Below are positions 10,331 through 60,000 of a stretch of 64,000 nucleotides of DNA, in pieces; the stretch's first letter is position 1, and each line of letters opens with the position of its first letter. The notes below the pieces were generated by a model that was given only the letters and a program-made list of their open reading frames with translations, made no database searches and was not told the DNA's origin. Made by a program: the position numbers and the translations under genes. Source of the DNA: Phyllobates terribilis (lineage: Eukaryota); NCBI RefSeq assembly GCF_046119375.1, contig NW_027362765.1:257114001-257178000 (forward strand). Reading direction: 5' to 3'.

Positions 10331-10617
10331 AAGAGCCATGCAGTACAGCATATTCAAAACATTATTCCCATTATTGGTGAGTGGGTCTCCCATAGTCTTT
10401 GCCTATGCCTTCCAAGCAAAAGCTGCCAAAAATTAGGACGGAGGAACTTGCAATGCTGGCAACACAGACCACGGTCACCCTGGTGGTATAGTGGTGGTGG
10501 AGGCTGAGGATAAGGAGAAAAGCAAAAAACTTCCGAAATGAGGAAGCGTATACCCATGTGTGGGTGTGAAGCGGTGCATGGCAATACACCTCCCGAAATA
10601 ACACAGTGGATTTGACT

Positions 10618-13896: not shown

Positions 13897-13959
13897 TGTA
13901 AATGAAGTAAAATAGCTTACACTCGCACTATCAATGGAAAAAGGGTAATAAATAGGAGA

Positions 13960-28152: not shown

Positions 28153-29426
28153 TGTAGCGCCCCGAGGGCTCGGTCGCTACAGGGGTATTGCACCTCACCC
28201 AGAGGTGTGATATTCCACTCCCGGGTAAGGATGGAGTATGGACCAGGGCTCAGTTAGCTGCATGCATCACACACACCCCATTTCCGGAGGACAGCTCAAC
28301 GGTGCTCCCATTTAGACAGTAATGCAGGCACGACAGACCATGTCCCTGGCTGGAGTGGGGAGGGGGGAGGAAAACCCAGTGATGTAGGAGCAGGAGGGGA
28401 CGGTTCCTGAGCGTAGGTAGGGGCTCATTGGTTGCTGGTCACCTGGGCTCATGTTCTAGAGGGAAGTATAAAAGGTGGGCACCATCTTAGATCGAGGTTC
28501 AGTCTGTTCGGTGGAGAACGCAGAAGAGAAGACAGGGAGCAGAGGCTCTACAGGAGCTCTGCTCAGAGGCAGGCCTAGAGAAAAGGCCGGGGCCTGAGAG
28601 GAGAAGGAACAGAGGAGAAGAGAAGGAACAGAAAAGGGAAAGAAGTGGCTGAGAAACAGAAGGGCTCAGGAACAAGAAGGTGGAAGGGACCCTAAGGACC
28701 AACGTGAATCGGGTGACGGGTCAGGCAAGAAGAGGGTACCGGATCCCAATTTGGTGGAAGCTAATAATCTTCAGCCAAGAACCGGAGGTCACGACCATCA
28801 CTTGGTGCGACCCCTTGCCAAACCTTGCTAGGAAGGCATAACATATAGGGTAGCGGGAAACGGGGCCCACGTTTGCCCACATAGACCCGCAGGAGCTGGA
28901 CAGAAGCTTGGTCACTGGCGGGGCATGAGCCGAAGGAAGGATAGGAAGGAGCTCTGAACCATACTCCTGAAGTGCCTGGGGGTTGACCGAGTCCCTCACC
29001 TGGTGGACACCGCACGGCTTGGGTGGTCACTGCTTGCGCCGAAGTGACCCGGAGCATATGAACTGTGAGTAAAAGACATTGGACTGCAGTACGTTGTCTG
29101 TGTACTCCTTGCTCCTCCAGTACTAACGGCACTTGGACTCTCTGCACCATCACCCCCACCATCCTCTACACTGCCCTGGGGCTGCACTCTTCCCGTGGGG
29201 AGTAACACTACCTCAGCTGCAAACACCATCAGCCTCAGCGGTCTGCCTTGCAGCGGCGGTTCATAATAGCCGCAATCCACGGGTAGCGTAGTCGGACATT
29301 ACCTACTGCACATAGCAGACTACCACTGGTCTGACCACCCTGAGCCACGGGACCGGGTCGCCACTACTACTCCCAGCATTGCCCCGAAGTCCGGTCCCGA
29401 GTGCCCACGGCCCAGGGGGCGAGTCA
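28153..29426 (+). mobile_element. Solo LTR of the cold-shock-domain LTR family, 4-bp TSD CAAG
   Basis: TGTAGCGCCCCGAGGG...CCCAGGGGGCGAGTCA, with CAAG on both sides. The first ~90 bp nearly match 57015 and 60311. Confidence 0.9.
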
Positions 29427-33915: not shown

Positions 33916-34029
33916 CTGAAGGTAGCTTACTGAGGGATGGCTGCGGTGGAGAGGAGTCACAGGAGGCAGTGTCACTGCTTCAGGAGGCCAGTGTCAGCGG
34001 GCCCTAGGCTCTCATAAAACGTCGGCGCT

Positions 34030-38450: not shown

Positions 38451-40717
38451 TCTAACAGTGATTGGCAGCAGCGCAGCAAATCAGTGTTAAGTTTTGTTTG
38501 TGGCTTCTCCCCCGCGCTGACAGCAGAGCTCAGGTAATGAGCCATGCTGTGCTGAGTAACAGTGCTCCTCCTCCACTATGTCACAGGCTGACAGTAAGAA
38601 GCACAGGGAGATGGATGACTGCCTACTACTGTCACACACAGTGTAGGAAAGACAAAGTGTGACACGAAGGGATGAGGGGAAGGGAGTCCAGACACTAGGG
38701 AATGGGGGAAATGGAGACCTCCTAGGCTGATCTGCAATTACCCTGTCTCCCCTACCGTCCCTATATTGGTTCTTAACCAATTGCCGCACAGGAACCTATC
38801 CCTGTATTTCCCTAGCGCTTGGCCCTGGATAGGGAAGGGGGGATGAGGGCTAGTCGATCCCCACTGACAACTAAAGACAGCAAAGGGACACAGATACGGG
38901 GGAAGTAGCTTAGCTTGAGGCGACTTCAGAGAGATGGCACACTCGTCCTCTTAGCACTAGAGAGGAAGTAAGAACTGCACTTGCTCCAACCCTTTGACGC
39001 GCCCAGGGGAATGGGGACGACTCGGCGCCTGGACCTTGTTGTTGCCTGACCTCGGGGGATGTCGCGGTGGTCGGCTCCTGGGCCCGTACCCTGGGGTCAC
39101 TCTTAAAAAGAAGGGGGAAGTTATATGGGATAGGGGAATGTTCGTGACGCCACCTGTGGTGTCTGGTGAGGATCACCAGCGCTGCGACAGTCCTCTGAGG
39201 CCGGTCTTCGGGCAGCTTAGTTGATGCGGCTCCCCACAGGTGGAGCGGGGCCTCAGGGCAGCGTAAGTGTAGGGATGCAGGACAGAGGGGACCCAGTCGG
39301 GACAGAGGAAGAATAGGCACACTCACAACAGTTCACTTCAGTACCTTTGCTGGTGGTGTTTCTGGCACGGTCCAGGGTACTTCAGGGTGAAGGGTACATA
39401 TCAGGACTCTCCCCAGTGAGCGGGTGTGGGGCCTCCTGGTTCTTGCCTTTCCTTGATAAGTTTCTGACCTGCCTGGAGCTAGGCCTAACTTGGTCTCTGT
39501 CTTGCACCTGCTGACCTGGTGGTAGGGCCTTCTGTTGGCGATCACACTCCCTGGTCTCTTGTGCCTCCGTGATTCCTGACCCTGGTATAACAGTCAGCTT
39601 TTGGTGTTCCTGGAACATATAGTTCGCCAGGGGTTCCGGTTATTTCTGCTGGATGTAAGGAATCCCTGCAGACGCGGACCCGGTGTCTGGTAAATGGTTT
39701 TGGGGTGAGCTGGTTAAGCTCCTCTGCCCCCTATGTTGCTTGCTTACTCCACTCGCCTTTGGCCACGCTCGGGGCCCTCACTAGCCTTCACACAGACAGT
39801 AGGCCTCGCTACTCTTCACCGCTATTTTGGCGTCGGCACGCCCTAGGCTCACTAACTCGAGCTCTCTGAGTCTGGACTGACCTGACAACCTCTCTGGCTG
39901 CAGCAGACTTCACACAGACTTCACTCTCTGTGGACTCCAGACTGTGGACTCCAGACTGTAGACTCCAAACTGAACTGCCTAGCTCCACCTTCCCTTTTTA
40001 TATCCCTAAGGGGCTCCCTCTGCTGGTTTGAGGTGGAAGGTGGAGGTGTGTGAATGCTATGAGGGCCTCTTGTGGAGGAATCCGTCCATGCAACCCTCTG
40101 GGATCTGTGGCACCAATGCGCAGCAGGGCGCCACATTCCCCCCTAGCTAAGCTCAGTACTCCCGGACTGAAGTAATTTTTATAACAGATGACAACAATAA
40201 CTCTTCACTTTACGGGAGGCACTTTGCTTGAACGTTACATATAAAACATTAGAGATAATAAATAGATATGTACAATACAATAAGCAACCTCAGAATTCAA
40301 GTCTCTTCCGGTGAGGTCCCCTAACAGGGTGTCCATCTCACAGGTTAAAGTACAAGGTAGCTTGAGGGACCTGTCCAAAGCAAACCCTCAACGTAGGCCC
40401 TGGGGTGGCTGCAGGGCATGGCGATCCTGAGCTGGACCTCCACTTCTGCCACGCCAGACAGGTTTTTGTTCTGAGGTCACCTAAAGGGGCACTCCAGGGA
40501 GTGCAATTATTTACCGCAAATAGTTTTTGGGCTGCACACAGTCCTCAGCCACAAAGTTCTTTATGTACCCTTACGGGTAACTAGAGATAACAAGGGAAGT
40601 GTCCATATCACTTAAATTGTCCATTATAAGGAAAAACACAAGTTAAGGAATTCATACATGAAAATACACAATATAATACCCCAAGGGCAACTATTTACAC
40701 TGTCAGAGTTTCCTTCT

Positions 40718-43700
40718 CTATTCTCTGTATCTGCCAGGGGTCTGACCTCGTGTGCTACGTGTCGACCTACGTGGTACGGGAGTGCGGATGGTATCTGTGT
40801 CTGCACCATCTGCTACCCTGTCACTTCTACGTGTGGGTAGATTGTAAAACTGCCTTAACCTCTCTATGGGACTGGCAAGTGTACCATTGGCTAGGCCTTC
40901 TTGCTCTGCTCCAACCGGGGATCCTTCTTCCGGGGATTCTTCTTGAGGCTCTTCTGAAGCACTTACAGGTTCTACTTGCTGTGGAGGGTCTTCTGGCTGT
41001 TGAAAGAAGTGGATCACAGGTATTATTACTGCTCCTCCTAGTTGAGGCCAATCTGCCGGGAAATCTCCTAAGTCAGTATGGAGTGCTGCTTCTTTAGGCT
41101 CCTCCGGTACGGTCAGAGGCACTTCTTCTTGGGGCTTTAGCAGGTCTGGACACAACTTCAGATGGTCTCTAGATACCGTTGCAGTCGTTATTTCTCCGTC
41201 TTTGCTAATCAAACAGGTCTTCTTGTTATCAAATCTTGAATTTAACACAGTGTAGGGTTCTCTCTCCCACTGGTCATCAAGTTTGTGGTTTCTCCTTTTC
41301 CTCTTTAACACCACTTCTCCTGGTGTGAAGGGTTCTGCTGGCGCACTTTTAATGTAGTGGGCTTCCTGCTTGTCCCTTACCCGAGTGAGACTGTCTTCGA
41401 CACAGGCCTGTACTCTTCTGTACTGCTCCTGTCTGGTCGCGTCCCAGTCCTCAGTGGACATATCTGCTTCTGGTTCTACTACACCCAGCTCCAGGTCCAT
41501 GGGCAACTTTCTGGATCTTGCTCGCATGAGATATGCTGGAGTACAATTGATGGAACTCACAGGTATGTGGTTGTACAGATCTACCAGGTCAGGTAGTAGG
41601 TCTGGCCACTGATTTCTCTCCTCTAGTGGTAAGGTCTTCAGCAGGTTGATGACAATGTTATTCATCTTTTCACAGAGACCGTTGGTTTGGGGGTGGTACA
41701 GTGTAGTCCGGATCTTTTTACACCCGTACAGATGGCAGAACTCCTTGAACAGTTCGGCTTCAAAGGCTGGGCCTTGATCCGTCAGCACCTGCTCCGGGTA
41801 TCCATGGGGCCTGCAGAAGTATGCCTAGAACGTCTTCACCGCAGTTTCTGCCGTCAGATCCTTGACGGGGGCGATCACCAGGAACCGGGAGTAGTGATCC
41901 ACCATGGTCAGGGCATAGGAATATCCTGACCTGCTGGGTGACAGCTTGACATGATCCAGGGCCACGATCTCCAAGGGACGAGTCATCTTGATGGGTTGCA
42001 GGGGTACCTTCTGGCTGCTGTAGTGTTTTCTTCTGAGGCTACAGGGTCCACAATTCCGGCACCACCTCTCAATGGAACTGCGCATTTCTACTCATAAAAC
42101 CAACACTTCAGCAGGGTTTCTAGCTTCTTCCAACCAAAGTGCCCCGCCTGATCGTGGTAGGCTTCCAACACCATCTGGATGACTGTCTTGGACACCACTA
42201 TCTGCCATACCATCTCATGGGTTTTGGGGTTGACTTACCTCCGGCACAGCTTCTCTCTATAGATGAACAGCCGGGCTCTTCTCATTCCACAGCTGCTTGG
42301 CTTGTAGAGACGCGTCCTTCTCCAGGGAGGAACCTTCCTGGGTTATCAGCTCTTTGATACGGCTGACAACCGGGTCGCTGTCCTGGGTCTCCTTCCAGCT
42401 GTGGTGAGGCAGGGGGTTTAACGTCTTTCTGCGATGCCTCCTGGAGGCTCGTTGCTCATGGACCACTCCATTCCGATGAAAGGCAGGTAGTTCAATCTCC
42501 TCCAGGTCATCCACTTCTTCCTCAGTGTCCGACTGGTGAGGCATCCTGGACAGGGCATCGGCGTTGGCGTTCTTGCGGCCCACCCGGTACTTAATAATGA
42601 ATTGGTAGTTTGACAGCCGAGCCATCCATAGTTGCTCCATGGCTCCTAGCTTGGCTTTTCCAGATGAGTCAAGGGGTTATCATCAGTGAAGGCAGTGAAC
42701 TTACTGGAGTCTAGGTAGTGCTTGAACCGCTCGGTGATGGCCCAGACCAGGGTCAGGAACTCCAACTTGAAGCTGCTATAGTTCTCTGGGTTCCTCTCGG
42801 TCGGGCAGAGCTTCCTGCTTGCATAGGCGATCACCTTCTCTCGGCCATTCTGCTTCTGACTTAACACAGCCCCTAATCCCTCGTTGCTGGCATCAGTGTA
42901 CAGCAGGAATGGTTAGCTGTAGTCAGGGTAGGCTAGGATCTCTTCGCCGGTCAGGATCTCCTTCATCGCCTCAAAGGATTCAGCTTGCTCCTTATCCCAC
43001 TGGAACGGGGGGTTTCTGCCTCTCCCGGACTGTCCTACCAGGAGATCTTGCAAAGGCGCCACTTTCTTGTTATAGTCATTCACAAACCTCCGGTAATACC
43101 CGACTAGTCCCAGGAACTGACGTACCTCCTTGAGGCTCTTCGGCTCCGGCCATTTCTGGATGGCAGTGACCTTTTCCGGGTCTGGTGCTACTCCCTCTGG
43201 ACTAACGATGTGCCCCAGGTACTGTACCTTTCGCTTGAGCAGGTGGCACTTTGAGGGCTTCAGCTTCATCCCATACCAGTACAGCGACTCAAATACCTCT
43301 GCCAGGTGCTTCAAATGGTCCTCGTACGTTTTGGAGTACACATTCACGTCATCCAGGTATAGTAGTACAGTCTTGAAGTTGCGGTGTCCCAGGCAGCACT
43401 CCATCAATCTCTGGAACATTCCGGGGGCGTTGCAGAGTCCAAACGGCATACTATTGAAATTGCAGAGTCCCATCGGGGTGGTGAAGGCCGTCTTCTCCTG
43501 ATCCTCCTCAGCAACAGCTACTTGCCAGTACCCACTAGTGAGGTCAAGGGTGGAGAAGTAATTTGCAGACTTCAAGGCAGCCAGGGATTCCTCTATACGT
43601 GGTAAAGGGTATGCATCTTTATGTGTAATGTGATTTACTTGTCTGTAATCTACACACATTCTCATGCTTCCGTCCTTTTTCCTGACTAGAACTAGGGGAG

Positions 43701-44859
43701 CTGCCCAGGGACTACAACTATCCCTCACTACCCCTGCCTTCTTCATGTCATGCAACATCTCTTTCGCCTTCTGGTAGTGTGCTGGTGGTATAGGCCTGTA
43801 ACGTTCTTTGATGGGTGGATGGTCGCCTGTGGAGATATGGTGTTGAACCCCCTTAATCCTCCCAAAGTCAAGTGGGTGCTTACTGAATACCTGCACGTAT
43901 TCCTGAACCACCCGGTGTACACCCTGCTTCTGATGGGCAGGAGTGGTGTCTGTCTTAACATGAAGCTGTTGACACCAATCCTCCACCTGGGTTGCCGGGT
44001 CGTTATCCTCTACTTCGTCTGGTGAGGTTAAGGACTCCACCGTGTGTATGGAGTTGTTATTTACTGTGTACAGCTTGGCAACAGTGGCATAGCGTGGTAA
44101 TCTAACCTCGTCCTCCCCATAGTTTAGGAGGCGTACGGGCACCCTCCCATTGCGTACATCTACTACCCCTCTGGCAGTCAGGAGTGTAGGTCTATGTTCC
44201 GAGTTAAGGGGCTCTACTACCGTCTGGTAGCTCCATCCTTTGAGACCTATTGCTGCTCTACACCAAATCAGCATTTCACTCATCGGGGGAATCACAATGG
44301 GTACCGGGTCTGTCACCCGCACATTACCAATTTCACCGCCTGTTAGCTTTACCTGTTGCTGGTACATACATAAGGGCTCGGATCTCTTTCTGGAGCGCCC
44401 TTCTCTGCCCTGATCTGGCAGTGTCAGCTATCTGTTGGAGCAAGAACTCCACTTCTCCCAAACAGTTACTAACAATATTTGTGCCAAGTACCATATACAA
44501 GTCTGTATCATCAGGATTAGTCTCTGCTACAATTAGTCCCTGGTCCTTCAGTTCCACTCTTCCCACCTTTACTGCCACATCCTTAACCCTGACTAGGTTA
44601 AGGGGGAGGCGTTTGAGGCATACACGGAAAGATTTGGATCTGGTGGGTGAAGTTAGTCTAAGGACCAGAACCTTTTGTAGAGGACATCAGGCATAATGGT
44701 TACCTGAGATCCTGTGTCCAGCAGAGCAGGTGTCGCGATGCCGTCCAGCACGATGGACAGGAAAGGTCTTCCTCCCACGAACCTGCGGTACCAGTTTGAT
44801 GGGCCTGAGGGGTCTACTCCTGGGTATCGGCCCTCGGCCCCAGGGTTTGTTCGTTTAAA
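40718..44859 (-). pseudogene. pol: Gypsy Pol (PR, RT, RNase H, integrase), disrupted
   Basis: Contains LLDTGSQ, YLDD, YTDAS...IAYASR, GHFG...C..C, LDHV, TDQG and NGLCEKMN. It is entered by a -1 frame at the slippery heptamer TTTAAAC (44853-44859). There is an in-frame stop at ~44654 and several frameshifts. Confidence 0.95.
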
Positions 44860-45752
44860 GGACAGCTCCGGATGGCGTGACCTGTCTTGTGGCAGCGGTG
44901 GCAGACAGGGTCCTTCGGCGGGCGGCTTTGGTCACTGGTCCTCCCAGGGGGTGGCGTTGTCCTCCTTCTCCTTCTCATCCAGGGGACATCCTCAGGGCTG
45001 TCGGCTAGCAGGATCCTCCCTTCCTCCTCGGGCTCTGTCCGGTGCTGCAGGGCACTCAGTACAGTGGTCAGGGTTTTGCTCAACTGACGCACTTCCGAGC
45101 GCAGGCTGTCCAGCTCACTAGGGAACGTTGCTTGCACCTTGGCTTCAGCAGCCACCGGGGAAAAGGTGGACGCTGCGGGCACTGGGGTGGCCCCACCCTG
45201 GTAAAATTGGATAGCAGTTGTTTCCAGGGGCTGCAGTCCTTTTATAGCCATGTCCTTAAGGGTGTCAAAGGTGGCATCTGGGTGATCCAGGGACCACCAA
45301 TGCACAGTCCTGCTCTTCTCTTGAGACCTCAGTCCCCGGATAAACTGTTCCTTCAGCATTCTATTTTCATTATCCATGCTGGTTGGACTAACCTGTTTCA
45401 GAGCTCGCAGGGCCCCTTGTAAATGCCAGGCATAGTCCCGAACACTGTCCTCTGGTTGCTGAGAGCAGTTGTAGAACCTCATCCGGAGGTCTGTCTCAGT
45501 ACGATTCTCAAAGACAGTCTGTAACTTTTTAAAGATTGCGGACACTGACTCCTGGCCTGCGGCCGACCAGGTCTCTACTTCTCGCTCCGCAGCACCAGTC
45601 AATTGTCCTAATACAACAGCGGCTCTTTGCTTGCCTGTCATAGAGTACATGTCCAGTATACCGCATATTTTCCTTTTGAATCCAGACAGGGTATCTGGTT
45701 TGCCGCTGTACTGGGGGATCCACTTCGCTCCAGGGATGTACGATAGGGCCAT
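44814..45752 (-). CDS. gag: Gypsy Gag (PNMA-like capsid plus CCHC zinc knuckle)
   Basis: 312-aa ORF with C-terminal CHRCHKTGHAIRSC (CX2CX4HX4C). Confidence 0.9.
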   Translation of the reverse strand: MALSYIPGAKWIPQYSGKPDTLSGFKRKICGILDMYSMTGKQRAAVVLGQLTGAAEREVETWSAAGQESVSAIFKKLQTVFENRTETDLRMRFYNCSQQPEDSVRDYAWHLQGALRALKQVSPTSMDNENRMLKEQFIRGLRSQEKSRTVHWWSLDHPDATFDTLKDMAIKGLQPLETTAIQFYQGGATPVPAASTFSPVAAEAKVQATFPSELDSLRSEVRQLSKTLTTVLSALQHRTEPEEEGRILLADSPEDVPWMRRRRRTTPPPGRTSDQSRPPKDPVCHRCHKTGHAIRSCPLNEQTLGPRADTQE

Positions 45753-46236
45753 GGGTATGACAGGGGTTACAAGCCCTGCTGGTGGAGCGGCTGTTTCGGC
45801 CTGCTCGGCGCCGAGCCGGGTTGAACATCAGGGTCGTTAACCGGTATTCCGGCGTTGTGCTGTTCTTCGGACATTCTGGCGCCCCCCTAACGAACCGTGG
45901 CCTACCTTCTCTTCTTTACTTCCGGTAGGCCGTAGCTCCGCAGGTGACGGTCTTCCTTCCGGACCTTGCGTCGCTTGCGTCCTATGTCAGAGCGTTCACC
46001 GGGGCTCCTTCCAGGACCTGGCGCTTCCTGGTTTGATGTCAAGGTGTGGGGCGTGTTCGGGGCTTCACGCGAATCAGCAGCTACACCTCTCAGTTTCCCG
46101 CGGTTACACCCTTCTTCCCGCTCGGCGGCACAACAATGGCGGCGATCTTCGCCACAGCTATATACACAGTTCTGATTAAAGGCGCACAGTACCCGGTGGC
46201 AACAGGCACAACACTCCGTCATTGCAGCGGGCACGG

Positions 46237-46255
46237 AATCCTGTTCGTGACGCCA
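46237..46255 (-). promoter_or_regulatory. Gypsy primer-binding site, tRNA-Ser (CGA-type)
   Basis: TGGCGTCACGAACAGGATT is complementary to ...AATCCTGTTCGTGACG-CCA, the vertebrate tRNA-Ser(CGA) 3' end as I recall it. Confidence 0.85.
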
Positions 46256-47799
46256 GGAAGAGATGACGCGCCCAGGGGAATAGGGACGACTCGGCGCCCG
46301 GACCTTGTTGTTGCCTGACCTCGGGGGATGTCGCTGTGGTCGGCTCCCGGGCCTGTACCCTGGGGTCACTCTTAAAAAGAAGATGGAAGTTATATGGGAT
46401 AGGGGAATGTTCGTGACGCCACCTGTGGTGTCTGGTGAGGATCACCAGCGCTGCGACAGTCCTCTGAGGCCGGTCTTCTGGCAGCTTAGTTGATGCTGCT
46501 CCCCACAGGTGGAGCGGGGCCTCAGGGCAGCGTAATTGTAGGGATGCAGGACAGAGGGGACCCAGTCGGGACAGAGGAAGAATAGGCACACTCACAACAG
46601 TTCACTTCAGTACCTTTACTGGTGGTGTTTCTGGCACGGTCCAGGGTACTTCAGGGTGAAGGGTGCATATTAGGACTCTCCCCAGTGAGCGGGTGTGGGA
46701 CCTCCTGTTTCTTGCCTTTCCTTGATAAGTTTCTGACATGCCTGGAGCTAGGCCTAACTTGGTCTCTGTCTTGCACCTGCTTACCTGGTGGTAGGGCCTT
46801 CTGTTGGAGATCACACTCCCTGGTCTCTTGGGCCTCCGTGATTCCTGACCCTGGTATAACAGTCAGCTTTTGGTGTGCCTGGGACATATAGTTCGCCAGG
46901 GGTTCCGGTTATTTCTGCTGGATGTAAGGAATCCCTGCAGACGCGGACCCGGTGTCCGGGAAATGGTTTTGGGGTGAGCTGGTTAAGCTCCTCTGCCCCC
47001 TATGTTGCTTGCTTACTCCACTTGCCTTCGGCCACGCTCGGGGCCCTCACTAGCCTTCACACTGGCAGTAGGCCTCACTACTCTTCACCGCTATTTTGGC
47101 GTCGGCACGCCCTAGGCTCACTAACTCGAGCCCTCTGAGTCTGGACTGACCTGATAACCTCTCTGGCTGCAGCAGACTTCACACAAACTTCACTCACTGT
47201 GGACTCCAGACTGTGGACTCCAGACTGTAGACTCCAGACTGAACTGCCTAGCTCTACCTTCCCTTTTTATATCCCTAACGGGCTCCCTCTGCTGGTCTGA
47301 GGTGGAAGGTGGAGGTGTGTGAATGCTATGAGGGCCTCTTGTGGAGGAATCCATCCATGCACCCCTCTGGGATCTGTGGCACCAATGCGCAGCAGGGCGC
47401 CACACCTTCACAAGGTCATAAGGGATCATGTGAATATCACCGGCACCTCCCTCTAGCAACAGTCAGTATTTAAACACCCAGCCTGGGTGTCAATTAGCCA
47501 GAGGCAGGTAGTCGCTGGGTCCTAGAGTGAGACAGCTAAGAAGGTGCCTGTAATTCCAAACAAAGAGATCTTCGGCAACCAACTGCAGGGCGACTGTCTG
47601 TCACTTCTGACACACCCGTGACAGCTACATCACTCACCAAAGGTTAGATATATGTAGCTGAGCTTGATTATCACCAATAGTGAGCCCTTGCCAACACAAA
47701 CAGTGGGTATCATAGGCGGCTTTACTCACTGGTGATAAAGGGTGAGTGGGCTCAGTCACTAAGGGAGGATTTCCCTCATTTTTTTGTTTCACCCCTGAC

Positions 47800-50057: not shown

Positions 50058-52915
50058 TACATGACTTTTCTTGATCTGATTTGGGCTGCATTGTTGCATT
50101 GAAGTCCGTATAAAGTCTTATTTTTCATGAATATTGTAAAGAGCAGCATAACGTATGAGGTTTCAGAAAATAGATTGCCTCTCATTAAATGTAATGGCAG
50201 CATTATCATCTTATAGATGCTATAACAGGCCCTTATTAGAACTCAGTAGGACAGACTGCAAATGGTTCTGTCTTTTTCAGCATAGCTTTCATTTGTGCTC
50301 TACATTTTCCAATTACCTTCTACTGTTTTTAGTGGTATCAAAGCACATTCCCTTTCATTAATTCTCTGGTCTTTTAATTGCTTTAGGGATAATTATGAAA
50401 AATGTCATAACGTGTTTTGCACACAAAGCCAGAAGCTTACTGTACACCTTATCTGTCTGTGCGGCAATGCCTCAGGAGGAAGACACAATGAATTATGTAG
50501 TGTAGATTTGAAAGTACTAATTAATCAGAAAGCTAGACCCCAGGAAGAGAGGAAGGAACAAGCAAAACTGTGGAATGGGCATCCTGCCTCCTTACTCCAA
50601 TGTGGCAGGTCATAAAAACTAATCCTTGCATTACTCAAAACATGCAAAAAAGACAAGATCTAGAGATATGATACTCTTTCATAACAGCACAAAAGTGCCC
50701 AAAAAAATAACTAACACCATTTATTATGTACTCTCACAGTAAACACACGAGTGAGGAATTGGAATTACATATAAAATGTAAAACATGGCAGATTATTTAC
50801 AAATTCCTAAGGCCAATTTCTTATAGTTATGTCCATACTGAAGAATTCCCTTGTGGGCTATTTTCTTCATACTGCCAAGAGAGAAAATATGACATTTACA
50901 AGACTAGAACCTCCCATTTTAGACTATTAGTTTCAGTAGATCTCCCGCATTAAACATAAGTATTTCCCATACATCATCACTACACAAGTGCACACTGAGA
51001 ATTAATATACTTCCAACTTTACTGTACCCTCTGAAATATATAAGCATTGTGCTGATCTATACCGTGTACGGTAGGTACCCTGTTTATGGTTGTCAACTGC
51101 CCAGCCACTCCTCTCCTCTCCTATCCCTTTGGTCCTTTCCCTTTCCTTTTCAGTCTCTTTCCTTTCCCTTTCTGTCATGTCCCATGATTTGGAAGTCATA
51201 CAGACAGTATTGTATTATCATTGTGACGCGCCCCCTGGGACATATTCCTTTTTGAGGGGAATACCCGGCACCGGATCAGATGGGGGGTTGTAGTCTCCGA
51301 GCGGCTGTGACCCGGCCCCGTGCCCAGGGCGTCAAGCTCAGTGTTATGTGGCAGTCCTACAGATGTTATTAAGAGTTCTTTTGTGTCGACTACGCCACCC
51401 GTTGTGATGCGGTCACTGTGGCCGCCGCTGCAGCAGGGTCCGCTGAGGCTGATGGTGGATGCGCAGCTTGGTGGGATAACCCCCAACGGGAGGGGTATAG
51501 CCTCAGAGGGGACAGGCGCAGAGGATGGGGGTTGTGGTGGTGCGGTGCAGCCGGCAGTGAAGACAGAGTCGGGTTGTGCAGTTAAGGGTGTTTACTTACT
51601 GCAGATGTTGTACTGGTCACTCCAGCTGCTAGTGACCACCCGAGCCGTGCTGCGTCCACCAGGTCCTGGATCCAGCCAACCCCCAAACAAGTCCGGAGCG
51701 TGGCCCTGAGCTCTCCCTCTGTCCTTTCTTCAGCCGTCCCCACCAGTGATTCACCTAGGTCCAGCTCCCTCGGGCCTTCTGTTGGGACACCCTTGGCCCT
51801 GGGTTCCCTGACCCTTCATGTGGTGTGCCTTCGGGGTGAATATGGTGGGTGACCGTGGCAAACGCTGCCCACGATCTCCGGTCTCTGGCTAGGGATTGTT
51901 TTTGCCCCCACCAGCTTGGGTTCCGGTACCCTGATGCTGACTCCTCACCCGGTGCTCTAATTTGGGTTCTTGGGTCCCTTCAGTCTTCCCCCTCTGGGTC
52001 TTTCTCTGCTCCACTCTCTCTCTCTCCAGGGCTGCTGTTTCCTTCTCTCTCCTCTCCAACTCACTTTCTGCGTCTGAACTTGTCCTCTGCAGCTGACTGA
52101 CCCTGATCTAAGTTGGTGCCCTCCTTATATATCCCTCTATGTGTGAGCTCAGGTGACCAGCACCCAATGAGCTCCTATCACTACCCAGACTGCTCCCCCT
52201 ATCTGCCCCTACACTACATGGGATGTACCACCCCCCTCCCACTCCAGCCAGGAACAGGCTCGGTTGTACCTGCACATTTCTAAGTGGGAGTACCGTCGGC
52301 CTGCTCCTCTGAAATGGGATGTATGTAGTGCATGCAGTCTATCTGAGCTCAGTTCCACACTCCATCCTTACCCGGGAGTGGAATATCACACCTCTGGGTT
52401 GAGGTGCAATACCCCTGTAGCAGCCGAACCCTCAGGGTGCTACATTCCCCCCTGGTAAACCACAGCACGTCCTCGGGCTGTAAAGACATAAAACACCAAA
52501 ACATACAATTTTTTTTTTTTTTTTTCATATAAACATATAAAACATATAAAACATTATATATATAAAACTTTTTTATATAAACATTCTCGTAGACTTCTCT
52601 TGTCTCTGGTTCCTCCTCCGGACACTGTGCAACGTGTGTCCGGGAAAAGTGCGACAGTCTCTTAGAAAAACTGGTTTTCTATAAAACCGGTAGGGGGCGC
52701 TTTAGGAAGCGCAACTATATACAGGGAGAAGTTGGAAGTTGGCCGCTCTCAGTCCTCGGCCAGGTAGAGGGAAGGGAATGGCTGCTCACAGTCCTCAGCC
52801 TGTAGGATAAAGGGGTTAACGGGTAAACAGTTCACTGGTCCCAACGGGGACTATTTTAGCTCTAACGGTTCACTGTGCCCCGACGGGCAACTATATACAG
52901 TCTCTACTCCCGTCC

Positions 52916-54742
52916 TCAACGACGGCTCCCTCCTGCTTTTTCTTGATATGGTGTTGCTTCAGACCCGTCCGGGTCCTCTGGCTCCTCCTCTCCGTACCGC
53001 AACTCCTCCTCCGTCAAGCGGTGTACGTGGAGGGCGTAAGGTCCTTTGGCACACTTGTGCCGGGTGAAAGTGACTTCGTCTCCGACGTAGAGGTCACGGC
53101 CTTTGTGACCTTCCGGCAGGTGGGACTCGACGTCTCTGCGAGTCACAAAAACGTCACCGCGGTTGTTACGGTCCCGAATAAAGCCCCACCCATGCTGCGG
53201 GTTGAACTTTATCACTGTCCCGATGGTGCGGGGACAATGCGCTGCACGGGGGTTCCTCCTAGTCCGGCTCTTCTGCTCCGCGCTCCGGATTTGGGCCTGT
53301 TGTTCTCTGACCCGCCTCTCCTCCCGTTCTCTCTTAAACTCTGCTAGCTGCTGACGACAACACTCAGTACGCTCAGCGGCGACTGCCCGAGTTTCTCCGG
53401 TGAACCCCATCAAATCTTCTCCCGTGGGGTCCCACACGAATTGGGCTTCTTCTAAAGGAGGCGAGACCCGAGTCACGGGCTTCGGAGCCGGGATCAGGGG
53501 TTCACACAAGGGCCCTAGTCTTTGTTGCCGCTCCAGCTCATGGTATCCTTCGGGCCAGATGAAGGGTCGCCCGTCCGGCCATGTGAGCTGGCTGAAGAGG
53601 TCCTCCCCCAGGTGTGGCACCCTTGGTATTGCGGGCGCGGGCGCGGTGGTGGTGGCGCCCGGGTTGCCCAGGCCTTGCGGCCAGGCCTGGGGCACCTGGA
53701 AGGTGAAGGGCACCGTTAGGACGGCGGCGCCCTGGGCTACCTGGCCTTGCGGCCAGGCCGGAGGCTCCGCGGAGGTAGGGGGCGCTGTTGGTGGTGCGGC
53801 GCCCGGGGGTACTAGGCCTTGCGACCAGGCTGGTGGTAATTCCTGCTTTGTCACGCTCCGGGTCGAGGCGCGTGACGTCACAGGGGTCGCTGCGGTGGCT
53901 TCCGGTCGGGGCCTAGTCCATGGCGGTGACATGGCGGCTACGGGCACAGCAGGGGGACTTTCGGGCTCTGCGACGGGGAGCTGGGGCAGGTGGGCGGTTT
54001 CACGGCTTGGGGTATAGACGTCCCCTTTACCTGCCTCCATGCGTTCGGCTCCCTCCTCGGCGCCGTCTCCGGCCTTGGGTCCTCCCGCGCCATCCTCAGA
54101 GGCGGTCTGCTTCCTCTTCCAGGGTAGCGTGCTCCGTTGACTGGTCTCTGCTTGCTGGGCCATCTCCCGGCTCCACTCCGCCAGTATCTCACGCTGTACC
54201 CGGGCCATCCTCCTTGCGAGGCCCTCCAGGGCAGTTTGTGCACACTCCCGGTCTCGGGGGAGCTGCGCTAAGATCTCCGCTAGACCTAGCGGGGTTGTGG
54301 ACTCTAGCAGGCTCCTGACCATCGGGTCGGTGCTGCTCTGCTCTTCTTCCGGCAGGCTCCTGGCCAGCGGGCCGGTGCTGCTCTGCCCTCCTTCCTCGGT
54401 CTCTAGCAGACTCCTGGCCAGCGGGCCGGTGCTGTTCTGCTTTCTCTCCATCTCCGGGTGAGCTCCTCCGCTACTCCTCGTTAGACCTCTTGCCTCCGGG
54501 TGCGCTCGCTCCAGACTCCTCCAGGCGACACCCATCTTTGTTCTCTCCTTTCGTCTCCTCCCACTTCGAGGGCGGTCCCGGGGCAACTCGGTGACTGTCA
54601 GCTCCAGGGGTAGTTCTTTCACGCTGACAGACACCTCCAACATCACAGTCTCTGTTGGTGGGGGCGGTTTCCACTTTTGGCGCCATTTTCTGTCCTGGCC
54701 CACGATGGGAGGTGGCCTCCTGCCCTCCTTTGGCACGCCCAT
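52916..54742 (-). CDS. ~608-aa Pro-rich/coiled-coil protein with a C-terminal Y-box-like cold-shock domain (CSD at ~53015-53224) and an acidic tail
   Basis: Uninterrupted ORF. GTVIKFNPQHGWGFIRDRNNRGDVFVTRRDV...GDEVTF...KGPYALHV aligns to the CSD pattern (GTVKWFN..GYGFI...DVFVH...G..V.F...KG..A..V). The first ATG after the PBS is at 54742, and the frame is also open further upstream. Confidence 0.88.
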   Translation of the reverse strand: MGVPKEGRRPPPIVGQDRKWRQKWKPPPPTETVMLEVSVSVKELPLELTVTELPRDRPRSGRRRKERTKMGVAWRSLERAHPEARGLTRSSGGAHPEMERKQNSTGPLARSLLETEEGGQSSTGPLARSLPEEEQSSTDPMVRSLLESTTPLGLAEILAQLPRDRECAQTALEGLARRMARVQREILAEWSREMAQQAETSQRSTLPWKRKQTASEDGAGGPKAGDGAEEGAERMEAGKGDVYTPSRETAHLPQLPVAEPESPPAVPVAAMSPPWTRPRPEATAATPVTSRASTRSVTKQELPPAWSQGLVPPGAAPPTAPPTSAEPPAWPQGQVAQGAAVLTVPFTFQVPQAWPQGLGNPGATTTAPAPAIPRVPHLGEDLFSQLTWPDGRPFIWPEGYHELERQQRLGPLCEPLIPAPKPVTRVSPPLEEAQFVWDPTGEDLMGFTGETRAVAAERTECCRQQLAEFKREREERRVREQQAQIRSAEQKSRTRRNPRAAHCPRTIGTVIKFNPQHGWGFIRDRNNRGDVFVTRRDVESHLPEGHKGRDLYVGDEVTFTRHKCAKGPYALHVHRLTEEELRYGEEEPEDPDGSEATPYQEKAGGSRR

Positions 54743-54978
54743 AATGGCGTCCGCTGCTCTTCCAAGGCGGGAAATCTGCGGTTTTGGCGGGAAGCGTCGC
54801 CCAGTGGCGGGAAACTCTGCAGATGGCGGGAACAAGCTGGAAATGGCGGACAATCGGCGGGAAACGACTGGTGATGGAGTCCGATGGCGTGGACCCTCCG
54901 GAACCGGCGGGAGACTTCTTTCTGAGGTAAACTTGCACTTTTCTTCAGGCACGCAGTACCCGGGTGTTGCGGGCACGT

Positions 54979-54997
54979 AATCCTGCCGACTACGCCA
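54979..54997 (-). promoter_or_regulatory. Primer-binding site, tRNA-Ser (AGA/TGA-type)
   Basis: TGGCGTAGTCGGCAGGATT is complementary to ...AATCCTGCCGACTACG-CCA. An identical PBS occurs at 58288-58306. Confidence 0.88.
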
Positions 54998-57014
54998 AAG
55001 TTGACGCGCCCCCTGGGACATATTCCTTTTTGAGGGGAATACCCGGCACCGGATCAGATGGGGGGTTGTAGTCTCCGAGCGGCTGTGACCCGGCCCCGTG
55101 CCCAGGGCGTCAAGCTCAGTGTTATGTGGCAGTCCTACAGATGTTATTAAGAGTTCTTTTGTGTCGACTACGCCACCCGTTGTGATGCGGTCACTGTGGC
55201 CGCCGCTGCAGCAGGGTCCGCTGAGGCTGATGGTGGATGCGCAGCTTGGTGGGATAACCCCCAACGGGAGGGGTATAGCCTCAGAGGGGACAGGCGCAGA
55301 GGATGGGGGTTGTGGTGGTGCGGTGCAGCCGGCAGTGAAGACAGAGTCGGGTTGTGCAGTTAAGGGTGTTTACTTACTGCAGATGTTGTACTGGTCACTC
55401 CAGCTGCTAGTGACCACCCGAGCCGTGCTGCGTCCACCAGGTCCTGGATCCAGCCAACCCCCAAACAAGTCCGGAGCGTGGCCCTGAGCTCTCCCTCTGT
55501 CCTTTCTTCAGCCGTCCCCACCAGTGATTCACCTAGGTCCAGCTCCCTCGGGCCTTCTGTTGGGACACCCTTGGCCCTGGGTTCCCTGACCCTTCATGTG
55601 GTGTGCCTTCGGGGTGAATATGGTGGGTGACCGTGGCAAACGCTGCCCACGATCTCCGGTCTCTGGCTAGGGATTGTTTTTGCCCCCACCAGCTTGGGTT
55701 CCGGTACCCTGATGCTGACTCCTCACCCGGTGCTCTAATTTGGGTTCTTGGGTCCCTTCAGTCTTCCCCCTCTGGGTCTTTCTCTGCTCCACTCTCTCTC
55801 TCTCCAGGGCTGCTGTTTCCTTCTCTCTCCTCTCCAACTCACTTTCTGCGTCTGAACTTGTCCTCTGCAGCTGACTGACCCTGATCTAAGTTGGTGCCCT
55901 CCTTATATATCCCTCTATGTGTGAGCTCAGGTGACCAGCACCCAATGAGCTCCTATCACTACCCAGACTGCTCCCCCTATCTGCCCCTACACTACATGGG
56001 ATGTACCACCCCCCTCCCACTCCAGCCAGGAACAGGCTCGGTTGTACCTGCACATTTCTAAGTGGGAGTACCGTCGGCCTGCTCCTCTGAAATGGGATGT
56101 ATGTAGTGCATGCAGTCTATCTGAGCTCAGTTCCACACTCCATCCTTACCCGGGAGTGGAATATCACACCTCTGGGTTGAGGTGCAATACCCCTGTAGCA
56201 GCCGAACCCTCAGGGTGCTACAATTGTGTTTATATTGTGCCGTTTGTTGCTATGCAATAAGGTTTGCGCTCTTTAGAATTTGTCCTTCCTCTCTCCTTGT
56301 CTCTCTCTGATGTCAGTAACACCTCCCTTCTTCCTCATTCACTGTATATCAGCCATCTTAGAAGCTCATGTGTTTCTGAAAAGTTTTTTTTACCTACTGT
56401 AACTGTGCATAACTACAAGAATTCAGCTGGAAAATAAACCTTCTTCTGGAATCTTTATATATGCTTCCTGCAGTCGAGTTCAAGCTATCTGAGGACATCA
56501 CTCTGTGTGAGTAACGGTTGATAGAGGCAGCCTAGAACTGGTGTCTCAAGCTCTCTACACTTGCAGCTTAGTTATTGAGTAAGAATACTTTTCTTTTTCC
56601 CTTCCCTTCGCTTTCGTTTCCTGCAGACCTTCTGAGCCCTGTACCTTCTTGGTAGGCGATATTATCCTCTAACTTGTCTTCTTCAGAGAATGGACATGCA
56701 ATCTGAATATGCTATCCTTGAACTGTTGACTTTTCTGCCTCGTCCCCAGATTATCTTCTTTCTTTAGATGAGAGAATCTATTTTGCACGGAATGAGTTTG
56801 GTACAAATCTTTCTTCACTCATCAGTTTGTAAATACAACTAATTTGGGATTAGTTTTCTGCTGATCGCCCAAAATGGCCACTGCCAGGTTAATAGGTAGC
56901 ATAAGACAGAGGAGAAGACTGGATAATATGTCAGAGAAGAAGGATGTATCACATGAACTCGGATGCGGCTGGGCAGGCTTCCCAATAATGCCTTGCAGTT
57001 ACTCCACACGATAG

Positions 57015-60000
57015 TGTAGCACCCCGAGGGCTCGGCTGCTACAGGGGTATTGCACCTCGAACCAGAGGTGTGGTATTCCACTCCCGGGTAAGGATGGAGT
57101 GTGGACTAGAACTCAGTTAGCTGCATGCACCACACACACCCCATTTCCGAGGAACAGACCGACGGCACTCCCACTAGAAAGATGTGCAGGTACGACAGCT
57201 TCTGTTCCTGGCTGGAGTGGGGAGGGGGAGGAAAACCCAGTGGTGTAGGAGCAGATAGGGGCGGGTTTCTGGGCATAGGAAGGAGCCCATTGGTTGCTAA
57301 TCACCTGGGCTCGGATGTCAGAGGGAGTATAAAAGTTGGGCACCATCTTAGGAGTGAGTTCAGTTGAGTCAGACAGAAGAAGAGGGAGAAGAGGAGTGAC
57401 AGGGAGCAGCAGCCCTGTCTGGGTGCTGCCCCTGGAGGGAGCAAGAGTGAAGAAGAAAGGAACAAGAAGCAAGGAAAGAATGAAACATAAGAAAAGGCCC
57501 AGAGACATGAAGCAAGAAGGAACCCGAACACGCTAGGAGTCAGCGGGTGAAGGGTTGGCAGATCAGGGTACCGGATCCCAAACTGGTGGAGGCCACTTAT
57601 CCTCAGCCAGGAACCGGAGGATGTGGCCACGTCTTGGCGCGACCACTCACTACACTCACCACGAAGGCATGCCACATAGGGTCAGGGAGACCGGAGAAAG
57701 GTTTCGCCATCAGAAGGCCTGAGGAAGCTGGACATGGGTGGGTCCCTAGTGGGGACGGCCAGAGAAAGGAACGGGGAAAGGAGTTCAAGGTCACACTCTG
57801 GAACTGCCTGGGGGTTGGTCGAGCCCCGTACCTGGTGGACGCAGCACGACTCGGGTGGTCCTACTGTGCACGGACGACCTGGTAAAGAACTGTGAGTAAA
57901 GCTTTTGAAACTGCACTTCAAGCCTCCGTGTTTCGTCGTCGCACCTGCACCATCAGTACTGGGACACCCGCACCATCACTCCCATTGTCATTTCTTTCAT
58001 AGCTGCCCTGAGGCCATACCCCTCCCGTTGGGGGTTATACCATCCACGCTGCACATCCGTACCACCGGCCTCAGCGGACTGCCCTGCAGCGGCGGCTTCA
58101 TAGCCGCATTCAACGGGTGGCGTAGTCGGACACTAATACCATCAAATCAATAGCGCCACTTAGTTTGACCACCCTGGGCACGGACCGGGTCACCGCCACG
58201 AGGACTACTACCCCTATCTGATCCGGCTCCGGGTATTCCCCGCGTGCGCAACGCTACCCAAACATGGCCCAGGGGGCGCGTCAACTTTGGCGTAGTCGGC
58301 AGGATTACGTGCCCGCAACCACCGGGTACTGCGTGCCTGAAAAAAGAGACTTTTATACTTGCCTGTGGTGAAGTTTTCCGCCGTCCGGAGTCGTTTCCCG
58401 CCATCTGGAGCCGATTCCCGCCATCCGACGCCATCTTCTGCCTTCTTCCCGCCATCCGTGGAGTTTTCCCACCATTGGACGCCATCTTGAGGACGCCGCG
58501 CGGGAAGAAGAGGGGCGTGGACTCCGAAAGCCCGCGAGAACTGAAGCCCCGCCTCACGTCCGGACGTTGCGTAAGGTCCTGGAAGGAGCCCAGCAGACGC
58601 CGACGTCACAGGAGCGCGACGGAAGGTCCTCAACCCTGACGATCCACTGCGTAGCCGCGGCCTACGGAAGAGGATCATCACAAGGTAGGCCACGGTCCAC
58701 TAGGGGGGAGGAGGATGTCGGATACGGAGGAGAGCTTCACTACCGCAGCCACCATCCAGCACTGCGTCCATCCCGAGAGGCAGCAGAAGCGGATCGGAGG
58801 CCGAGGATGACGCCGCGGGGGAGGCCGCAACGACAAGTAAGGGGAACGCCGTTACTCCGGGCCCTGAGGCCGCGGACCTGCCCCTACCTCCCGCCGCGGA
58901 ACCCGAAGCTCTGGGTGCCGCACCGCCCGCCGTGCCTCCATCACCAGCAGTTAGCCCTCCAGCAGCATGCTCTGCAGCGGAGCCTCGCCCAGGACCGTGC
59001 TCCCCAACATCGGGCACGATCAGAAAGTCACCGGCCTGGTTGAAAGGCCGAGTGCCCGCGGGCGCTTCACCCCAGCCGGGGCCCCCAGTCGTACCACCAT
59101 TGGGGAAAGACCTGTATGAGCAGCACACCTGCCCGGAGGGGACACCATTCGTCTGGCCGCCTGAATACACCAACCCCCGCTCCAGGAAGAGTCACCCCGT
59201 AGGAGCAAGGGCCCCAGATGAACCGTTAATCCCAGCTCCGGAGCCGTGGACCTCTCTTCACCCCCGCTGGAAGACGCCAATTCGAAGGGGACCCCACTGG
59301 AGAAGACCTGATGGGGTTCACTCAGGAGACCCGGGCGGGCGCCGTCCGGCGCTATGGGACCTGCCGCCAACAACGGGCAACGGTTGAGCGGGAGCGGAGA
59401 GAGAGGAAAGTGAAGGAGAAGTGGCTCCACATTAAAAACGTGGAGCAGAAGACAAGGGCCCGCCAGGACCCCCCGTACAGCTCACGGTCCCCGAGTCACC
59501 GGGACTGTTGTTAAGTTTCATATGGCATGTGGCTGGGGCATCATTTAAAACCCGAAGACCATGAGCCAGGTGTTTGTAAACAGGAGCGACGTAGAGTCCC
59601 ACCTACCGGAGGGGCACAGTGGACGGGACCTGGTGCCTGGAGATACCGTCACCTATACCAGGCATAAGGGAGTGAAGGGGTGGTGCGCCCTTCATGTCCA
59701 CCGGGTCAAGGAGGAGGAGGAGTTATCGTACCAGGAGGAGAAGAAAGAGGGCCCGGACGGGTCTGAACCTGAGGAAGAGGAAGGAGCGTGTGGAGGATAC
59801 CGTAAATCGTAAACGGTAAAAGAGGAGATGTAAATAGTTACCCGATCGGGTATAAGGACTGTTGTGAGACTGTTTCCACAAAGAGTGTGGTCCCCGTTGG
59901 GACAGAAAGAGAACTGTTGCCTGTTTTGCCCTAATCCCTAACCTGACCGAGGACTGAGAGCGGTCATCCTTTCCCTCTACCTGGCTGAGGACTGACAGCG

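Follow-up and report, generated by a model that had tools for sequence, protein, structure and literature searches.

Capture of cold-shock domains (CSDs) by LTR retroelements is not without precedent, as 46 bird endogenous retroviruses (ERVs) carry a host-type CSD (PF00313); these elements were found through their RT and belong to the ERV-A/B and ERV-G groups, and the capture appears to be recurrent, which suggests a benefit to the element (PMC12287698). Non-autonomous LTR elements mobilised in trans, such as LARD, TRIM, barley BARE-2, mouse ETn/MusD and VL30, and mammalian MaLR, retain LTRs, a primer-binding site (PBS) and a polypurine tract (PPT), have lost pol and depend on an autonomous relative that shares these cis signals; LARD, TRIM, ETn and VL30 are not known to have a conserved protein, while BARE-2 keeps a gag. 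The element described here was found in a 64-kb stretch of a frog genome (the window, meaning the whole stretch analysed). In contrast to the bird ERVs it has no gag, pol or env, its cis signals are Gypsy-like, and its only ORF is a gene for a Y-box-like CSD protein under measured purifying selection, whereas in comparison with the non-autonomous elements it retains a non-retroviral gene for a putative RNA-binding protein.

The original prediction of a complete LTR-PBS-ORF-PPT-LTR element with a target-site duplication (TSD), whose only gene encodes a Y-box-like CSD protein, was confirmed, with two corrections, namely that the element lies on the minus strand and that an in-frame ATG in U5 may be the real start of the ORF. 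The features of the element and of related insertions in the window are listed in the table. The two LTRs showed no differences, which marks a recent insertion. The PBS is composed of TGG plus 16 nt and located 4 nt after the 5' LTR, and its 16-nt complement is the exact 3' end of at least 12 tRNA-Ser genes called by ARAGORN, found in the loci L005, L014, L017, L033, L042, L044, L048, L053 and L080. A second PBS type (TGGCGTCACGAACAGGAT) could not be matched to a tRNA in the same way, since its hits on viral contigs held no tRNA genes.

Features of the CSD-bearing element and of related insertions in the 64-kb window (residue numbers refer to the 608-residue protein)
Positions	Strand	Feature	Details
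51224..56222	-	Complete non-autonomous LTR retroelement	4999 bp; identical LTR pair, TSD, PBS, PPT and a single ORF
55002..56222	-	5' LTR	1221 bp, TG..CA; 100% identical to the 3' LTR; TATA-like site at 55909
51224..52444	-	3' LTR	1221 bp
56223..56226	.	TSD, upstream copy	CAAT on the element strand
51220..51223	.	TSD, downstream copy	CAAT on the element strand
54979..54997	-	PBS	19 nt; complementary to the 3' end (with CCA) of tRNA-Ser (AGA/CGA/TGA)
54743..55001	-	Leader	Most conserved stretch at nucleotide level; 17-nt motif shared with the Gypsy (54947-54963); five TTCCCGCC repeats (54766-54863); open in the frame of the ORF from the ATG at 55021
52916..54742	-	ORF of 608 codons plus stop	Open frame 52916-55264; ATGs give 701 (from the in-frame ATG at 55021 in U5), 608 or 430 codons
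54134..54250	-	Predicted long helix 1	Residues 165-203; AF2 block pLDDT 68-92 (about 90 over the core)
53393..53632	-	Conserved Pro-rich middle block	Residues 371-450; overlaps the block used for dN/dS (about 53342-53641)
53255..53389	-	Predicted long charged helix 2, directly before the CSD	Residues 452-496; AF2 pLDDT 93-95; 30% K+R and 16% D+E
53018..53230	-	CSD, predicted five-strand barrel with a Y-box-length loop	Residues 505-575
52445..52453	-	PPT abutting the 3' LTR	AGGGGGGAA
57015..61580	+	Adjacent older relative of the same family	LTRs about 93% alike; TSD ATAG; tRNA-Ser PBS; CSD ORF remnant (outer bounds 58264-59806) broken by at least two frameshifts and four in-frame stops
28153..29426	+	Solo LTR of the same LTR superfamily	TSD CAAG
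38995..47404	-	Decayed Ty3/Gypsy element of the putative helper lineage	LTRs 96.7% alike; TSD AAGG; gag at 44814-45752; pol region (40718-44367) in several pieces, with at least one frameshift and at least three in-frame stops

The predicted absence of retroviral coding capacity also held. No CCHC, D[TS]G[AS] or YxDD pattern occurred in any of the six frames, and in a Pfam search no family other than the CSD hit the ORF or the other ORFs of the element, thus revealing no Gag, protease, RT, RNase H or integrase signal. The N-terminal and middle parts of the protein showed no homology to the gag of the local Gypsy element by BLASTP or by hhalign (probability 0.6%), and Foldseek returned CSDs only. 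The element is therefore not an autonomous member of the Ty3/Gypsy group with gag plus pol in the order PR-RT-RH-IN and, given its ORF of 608 to 701 codons, it also does not match LARD or TRIM, whose internal region is without coding capacity.

The C-terminal end of the protein passed the Pfam threshold for a CSD with 34.9 bits against a cut-off of 27. The AF2 model, a prediction and not a solved structure, displayed five strands at residues 505-514, 519-524, 530-534, 556-564 and 567-575, with block pLDDT values of 79-89 except for one block at 49, which covers the loop between strands 3 and 4. The top Foldseek hits were CspE, CspA and YB-1, with a target TM of 0.86-0.89 to the best-matching Csp chains (CspA, CspE, CspC) and about 0.8 to YBX1. 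The predicted motifs GWGFI and DVFV are present, and the Y-box-like long loop was confirmed, as the alignment to YB-1 is almost gapless (a single 1-residue gap), whereas a bacterial Csp needs a 5-residue gap. Of the four stacking residues of YB-1 (W65, F74, F85 and H87; PMC7498358), the F74 and F85 positions are kept and absent only in one degenerate relative, P0098 of Ranitomeya variabilis, while the W65 position is K here (A, D or S in relatives) and the H87 position is T here (A or N in relatives). Replacement of the usual W and H contacts, as predicted, was thus seen across the family, and nucleic-acid binding may therefore be weaker or different. The predicted helical segments and the Pro/Ala-rich disorder were likewise confirmed.

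Relatives of the ORF were found in Phyllobates, Ranitomeya and Anomaloglossus, namely P0001 (P. terribilis), P0002 and P0098 (R. variabilis), P0003 and P0011 (A. baeobatrachus), and P0005 (R. imitator). All five loci that could be resolved carry the intronless ORF between LTR-like repeats: L001, the nearest copy, which is located in P. terribilis and shows 88.6% nucleotide identity (LTRs 100% identical), L003 (99.5%), L004 (99.8%), L131 (98.7%) and L002 (about 95%). The sixth annotated relative, from R. imitator, is a chimeric gene model without such repeats. A more distant CSD ORF in the toad Bufo bufo (P0110, locus L133) lies between repeats that are 96.8% alike. Three word-indexed protein searches returned only P0001; the two whole-length searches scored the 8000 candidates sharing most words, a set probably crowded by the Pro/Ala-rich sequence, and the search with a restricted region scored 1131 candidates. 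As had been anticipated, public records list the relatives as "uncharacterized protein" or "Y-box-binding protein 2-A-like", the latter being the name given by NCBI to the Bufo relative. No description of such an LTR family was found in the literature searched, which did not include Repbase and Dfam.

In comparison with L001, dN/dS was 0.25 for the whole ORF (Fisher P 2e-23), 0.10 in the middle block and 0.03 in the CSD (Fisher P 6e-16). These values are far below 1, though they rest on a single pair of copies, and dS was oddly uneven, being about 0 in the leader and 0.98 in the CSD. At the nucleotide level, the leader is 97-99% identical to that of L001, against 70-93% over most of the element, with only the outermost LTR tips reaching 96%. 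Neither the CSD tests, nor the literature search, nor the dN/dS values, all three of which had been named beforehand as able to overturn the finding, did so.

The selection values speak against a passenger gene, i.e., a host Y-box-like retrogene that was transduced once and is merely carried along without a role in the life cycle of the element. In favor of this reading, the ORF is intronless and the family profile scored Y-box proteins best among solved structures (38 bits, E about 1e-8), but some metagenomic CspA-family proteins scored as high, and no full-length cellular homologue and no cellular progenitor with this architecture was found among 1.84 billion representatives. The CSD core is conserved across lineages that are otherwise only 24-41% identical, and an A17 run in the 3' UTR, considered as a possible retained poly(A) tail, is private to this copy and absent from L001, L002, L003, L004, L131 and the neighbouring element, so that it is not a remnant of an mRNA tail. 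We consider a passenger gene very unlikely. An origin of the CSD from dinoflagellates was also rejected, because the high total scores of the Biecheleria proteins result from 4-10 repeated CSDs, while their best single domains reached about 25 bits or less against the CSD of the window. Even less likely is that the ORFs are domesticated host genes using LTRs as promoters, with selection acting at host level; RefSeq models exist for several copies, but LTR pairs are 98.7-100% identical with intact TSDs at non-orthologous sites, and the window alone holds several insertions, including a decayed copy and a solo LTR, which is the pattern of an active transposon.

The idea of a helper Gypsy, also part of the original prediction, gained support. 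The decayed Gypsy of the window shares with the element the LTR tips TGTRGCRCCC...GCGCGTCA, the PPT GGGGGGAA and the 17-nt leader motif, which occurs exactly three times in 64 kb, always in leaders, with 0 expected; homology of the leaders was also seen by alignment, although the similarity is limited to these segments. The PBS of the Gypsy differs from that of this copy, but is identical to that of L003, L004 and L131. This points to trans-mobilisation. The local Gypsy copy is itself broken and represents the putative helper lineage, not the helper, and no autonomous partner with the same LTR was seen. The leader revealed no unusual folding stability (z = 0.29). The 5' leader of the full-length RNA is poor in ATGs, with 2 sense ATGs in 1138 nt against 13 expected (P about 0.0005); the same depletion was seen in L001, the neighbouring element and the Gypsy. 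The transcription start is inferred from a TATA-like site only.

Shared cis signals, together with the bird ERVs that combine an RT with a captured CSD, would also fit a deletion derivative, in which an autonomous Gypsy or ERV-like element carries the CSD gene as an accessory ORF next to gag-pol and the copies seen here are internally deleted descendants, with a protein working together with the Gag of the parent. However, none of the eight LTR-flanked CSD loci examined (the window element, its neighbour, L001, L002, L003, L004, L131 and L133) has gag or pol. The 1142-codon ORF of L004, first considered as evidence for an autonomous version, is a nested GIY-YIG/Penelope-like insertion fused in frame to the start of the CSD ORF, and it is the only extra ORF there. 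In addition, the Gypsy of the window has no CSD remnant, and the divergent lineages (24-41% protein identity) all have the same short layout, making this explanation unlikely.

Taken together, we explain the locus, with moderate confidence, as a young copy of a non-autonomous LTR retrotransposon family derived from, and dependent on, a Ty3/Gypsy lineage, which kept only the cis signals that the proteins of a helper must recognise (LTR tips, a tRNA primer site, a conserved leader and a PPT), while gag-pol was replaced by one intronless gene for a largely disordered protein with two long helices and a C-terminal Y-box-like CSD. The anatomy, the identity of the CSD, the recent insertion, the presence of the family in several frog genera, the strong purifying selection on the protein and the sharing of cis signals with a Gypsy were shown by our analysis, whereas mobilisation and the role of the protein, including its expression and RNA binding, are inferred from sequence alone. 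In this view, the RNA would be packaged, reverse-transcribed from a tRNA-Ser primer and integrated by Gag and Pol of an autonomous Gypsy relative. The CSD protein would be translated from the full-length RNA through the ATG-poor leader, bind that same RNA in cis, multimerise through its helices and act as a chaperone, stabiliser or packaging adaptor, standing in for the nucleocapsid function that the element lacks, much as ORF1p serves LINE-1. Cis action would explain why selection keeps the ORF intact in lineages that go on transposing, and cellular YB-1 supports retroviral replication (PMC6040738), which lends plausibility to such a role.

The interpretation given in the original prediction, a mobile RNA-binding cargo that could protect or package element RNA, assist a helper Gypsy or counter host silencing, is supported, though the roles proposed in it remain inference. 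A trans-acting regulator that manipulates the host or the helper, for example by masking or stabilising mRNAs in germ cells, blunting silencing or competing with the Gag of the helper, would be in line with the general ability of Y-box proteins to mask and package mRNAs and with the altered RNP residues, which suggest a changed specificity. It appears doubtful, because a purely trans-acting benefit is hard to maintain by selection among many copies of a non-autonomous element, and nothing in the sequence points to silencing pathways.

As a tentative and more far-reaching possibility, parasites of Gypsy elements in neobatrachian frogs may have replaced Gag with a self-encoded CSD protein that acts in cis, like ORF1p, which would be a previously unrecognised replication strategy for LTR elements; together with the independent captures in bird ERVs and the Bufo group, it would mean that CSDs are a convergent, repeatedly recruited substitute or supplement for the nucleocapsid chaperone. 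Non-autonomous LTR elements are usually thought of as protein-less hitch-hikers or gag-only cheaters, and a family that discards gag and pol, yet keeps a cellular-type gene for a putative RNA-binding protein under strong purifying selection, suggests that such parasites can invest in their own RNA-handling factor. It would be a natural case for asking what a nucleic-acid chaperone contributes to retroelement fitness, and could help to explain the very large, Gypsy-rich genomes of poison frogs. In practical terms, the current annotation of these ORFs as host genes inflates gene counts and can mislead studies of Y-box proteins.

Comparison with further systems underlines what is shared and what differs. 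The vertebrate Y-box proteins (YB-1, YBX2/FRGY2) are the best-scoring solved relatives of the family profile and have the same loop length between strands 3 and 4, but identity to the YB-1/YBX2 CSD is about 30%; their layout comprises a short Ala/Pro N-terminus, the CSD and a long tail of alternating basic and acidic blocks, while the CSD of the frog element is C-terminal and followed by only a 30-residue acidic tail. LINE-1 ORF1p provides a functional analogy only, being a retroelement-encoded protein with a helix or coiled coil followed by a nucleic-acid-binding domain; there is no sequence or fold relation, as ORF1p has an RRM plus CTD, and LINE-1 is autonomous and has no LTRs. Finally, the rare fixation of a cellular RNA-related domain in an LTR element is shared with LTR retrotransposons that gained additional or acquired domains, such as those with plant aORFs (PMC7264820), an orchid Gypsy with an m6A demethylase domain (PMC9289625) and maize Bs1, but those elements mostly keep gag-pol, while in the frog element the acquired gene has replaced them.

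The LTR element lies on the minus strand and is delimited by two direct repeats of 1221 bp, which revealed no difference between them. Read on the minus strand, each repeat starts with TG and ends with CA, and the four bases CAAT flank the element on both sides. Four bases after the 5' LTR, TGG is followed by 16 bases, and a search of metagenome contigs with the complement of those 16 bases uncovered nine loci, with at least twelve genes in all, in which ARAGORN calls tRNA-Ser (AGA, CGA or TGA) genes ending exactly at the match. The primer-binding site (PBS) is therefore real and represents a 19-nt match to tRNA-Ser with its CCA. The sequence AGGGGGGAA abuts the 3' LTR. Zero differences in 1221 bp mean a very recent insertion; at an assumed rate of 1e-9 per site per year, the age would be under about one million years.

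Coordinates of the element, its gene and other features of the window, and of two features at relative loci
Feature	Position	Strand	Remarks
5' LTR	55002-56222	minus	1221 bp
3' LTR	51224-52444	minus	1221 bp
Primer-binding site	54997-54979	minus	TGG plus 16 bases
AGGGGGGAA	52445-52453	minus	abuts the 3' LTR
Open frame	55264-52916	minus	in-frame ATGs give three possible products
ATG of the 701-codon product	55021	minus	inside U5, reading through the PBS; the only long-ORF ATG of the leader
ATG of the 608-codon product	54742	minus	good A-3/G+4 context
ATG of the 430-codon product	54208	minus	start used in the NCBI model of the P. terribilis relative
TATA-like site	55909	minus	
Leader depleted of sense ATG	54743-55880	minus	
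Leader of the neighbor element with similar ATG depletion	57015-58560		
Leader of the Gypsy with similar ATG depletion	45752-47270		
Five TTCCCGCC repeats in the leader	54766-54863	minus	about 20-nt spacing
Three TTCCCGCC repeats in the neighbor's leader	58395-58453	plus	
GTAAGT donor-like site	55377	minus	in the LTR
Pyrimidine run plus CAG	52454-52480		just upstream of the PPT
Tandem repeats inside the ORF	53654-53830 and 54302-54445		72 nt x 2.5 and 54 nt x 3
Region of codon comparison	52919-55021		compared with L001 5164-7293
Adjacent older relative	57015-61580		792 bp away, opposite orientation; TSD ATAG
Solo LTR	28153-29426		TSD CAAG
Ty3/Gypsy element	38995-47404	minus	TSD AAGG
Four satellite arrays	8915-10410, 13916-15714, 20287-21809, 32674-33986		periods of 52 nt, about 150 nt, 28/31 nt and 72 nt; some carry long spurious ORFs
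ORF with a BED zinc finger	12733-13896	minus	387 codons; may be a remnant of a hAT-type transposase or a ZBED gene
Nested Penelope-like (GIY-YIG) element	L004 3104-8246		Anomaloglossus copy
Repeat-flanked toad ORF	L133 7061-11896		Bufo bufo

Of the three possible products of the open frame, the 608-codon form is the ORF of the original prediction. Pfam finds only a cold-shock domain (CSD; 34.9 bits, cut-off 27), while the other ORFs of the element hit nothing. No CCHC, D[TS]G[AS] or YxDD pattern occurs in any frame, and both BLASTP and hhalign comparisons with the gag of the window's Gypsy were negative. AlphaFold2, run with a 7-row family alignment, predicts a mostly disordered chain with three confident parts, namely a helix at residues 165-203, a helix at residues 452-496 (pLDDT 93-95), and a five-strand barrel at residues 505-575. 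Foldseek analysis of this model against the PDB returned cold-shock proteins and Y-box CSDs, with a target TM of 0.86-0.89 for the best-matching Csp chains (CspA, CspE, CspC) and of about 0.8 for YBX1, whereas the viral structure library returned only phage and giant-virus CSDs and no Gag-like fold. At the sequence level, the alignment to YB-1 is nearly gapless through the long loop, while a bacterial Csp needs a 5-residue gap. A profile of the family scores YB-1/YBX2 best among solved structures, at 38 bits, followed by bacterial Csps at 32, Lin28 at 19, CARHSP1 at 17, and CSDE1 at 16. Of the four stacking residues of YB-1 (PMC7498358), the F74 and F85 positions are kept, while W65 is K and H87 is T, and both of the latter positions vary in relatives. 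The tandem repeats inside the ORF encode repeated Pro/Ala-rich and STGPLARSL-type peptides; the disordered region therefore grows by duplication.

An exhaustive HMMER search of 1.84 billion representatives with the C-terminal 250 residues unveiled six clusters carrying the family signature, all from dendrobatoid frogs: Phyllobates terribilis (P0001; 84% identity by BLASTP and 89% over the C-terminal 250 residues), Ranitomeya variabilis (P0002 and P0098), R. imitator (P0005), and Anomaloglossus baeobatrachus (P0003 and P0011). In each of the five resolvable loci, the ORF is intronless and lies between LTR-like direct repeats. In L001, the P. terribilis copy, these are 1247 bp long and 100% identical, and the whole element is 88.6% identical to the window copy. 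The repeats of L003 measure 1284 bp (99.5% identity), those of L004 1150 bp (99.8%), and those of L131 1017 bp (98.7%), while those of L002, of unresolved length, are about 95% identical and carry private indels. In L004, an Anomaloglossus copy, a Penelope-like element is nested inside the CSD ORF with a 263-bp duplication, creating a 1142-codon fusion frame. The sixth relative, P0005 (locus L132), is a chimeric multi-exon gene model at which no flanking LTR pair was seen. The nearest CSDs outside the family are a Logan contig protein (P0099) and P0110 of Bufo bufo (locus L133), named 'Y-box-binding protein 2-A-like' by NCBI. P0110, whose CSD is at the N-terminus, also sits between 1.13-kb direct repeats that are 96.8% alike, with a PBS one mismatch away from the Gypsy type, and may belong to a sister group of CSD-bearing LTR elements. 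The assemblies that hold relatives are GCA_046119375.1, GCA_051348905.1, GCA_048569485.1, GCA_958301615.1, and GCA_905171765.1.

The window itself holds two more insertions. The directly adjacent, older element of the same family has LTRs about 93% alike and the same tRNA-Ser PBS, but its ORF is broken by at least two frameshifts and four in-frame stops. The other is a solo LTR of the same LTR superfamily, which is about 80% identical to the LTR of the element over the first 360 nt.

Codon comparison with the intact L001 ORF gave a dN/dS of 0.25 overall, 0.10 in the conserved middle block, and 0.03 in the CSD. In the CSD, about 26 of 47 synonymous sites are changed, against about 4 of 154 non-synonymous sites; Fisher P is 6e-16 for the CSD and 2e-23 for the whole ORF. 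These values rest on a single pair of copies, and synonymous divergence is very uneven along the ORF, being about 0 in the leader codons, 0.2-0.3 over most of the ORF, and 0.98 in the CSD, which we cannot explain, though mosaic recombination between sub-lineages is possible. The first 93 codons, which form the leader, show almost no change of any kind and, at 97-99% identity, are the most conserved stretch of the element, which fits a cis-acting RNA or DNA role better than coding constraint. The leader also carries the TTCCCGCC repeats, and all eight occurrences in the window lie in the leaders of the element and its neighbor (2.1 expected). They are absent from the Anomaloglossus, Bufo, and Gypsy leaders and could be a protein-binding array on the RNA or DNA.

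The Ty3/Gypsy element of the window is decayed: its LTRs are 96.7% alike and it displays gag, RT, RNase H, and integrase in that order, but its pol is broken by at least one frameshift and at least three in-frame stops. Though it has no general nucleotide similarity to the CSD element, it shares the parts that a helper's proteins must read, namely the LTR tips (TGTRGCRCCC ... GCGCGTCA) and the PPT GGGGGGAA, a 17-nt leader motif that occurs three times in the window, all in leaders, with none expected by chance, and further leader homology with L003 and with the neighbor element. Its PBS (TGGCGTCACGAACAGGAT) is identical to that of the CSD elements L003, L004, and L131, while the window copy, its neighbor, and L001 have switched to tRNA-Ser. 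The pyrimidine run plus CAG just upstream of the PPT is likewise conserved in the family and in the Gypsy.

From the TATA-like site to the ATG of the 608-codon form, only two sense ATGs occur in 1138 nt, whereas shuffles gave 13.0 +/- 3.4 (P about 0.0005) and the antisense triplet CAT occurs 16 times. The two ATGs belong to a 22-codon upstream ORF and to the in-frame start in U5. The same depletion is seen in L001, the neighbor element, and the Gypsy. This suggests that scanning ribosomes reach the ORF on the full-length RNA and that the 701-codon form is a serious candidate. An ORF that starts in the LTR and contains the PBS is known from yeast Ty1.

Taken together, we consider it well supported, with high confidence, that this is a non-autonomous member of a Gypsy-related LTR lineage that transposed recently and carries a selected CSD gene. 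That the protein binds its own RNA in cis and acts as a chaperone, stabilizer, or packaging adaptor for a helper's particles is, in contrast, only inferred and remains tentative. The argument is evolutionary: a gene in a non-autonomous multicopy element stays under purifying selection only if intact copies transpose better, which requires a cis benefit. The alternatives considered are a deletion derivative of a CSD-bearing autonomous element, a trans-acting regulator, a passenger gene, and a host gene family.

We found no description of an LTR family of this kind in the literature searched, which did not extend to Repbase and Dfam. Non-autonomous LTR elements and retroelement capture of CSDs are both known, and precedents lend plausibility to the inferred role: cellular YB-1 supports HIV replication (PMC6040738), and CSDs were captured several times by bird ERVs (PMC12287698).
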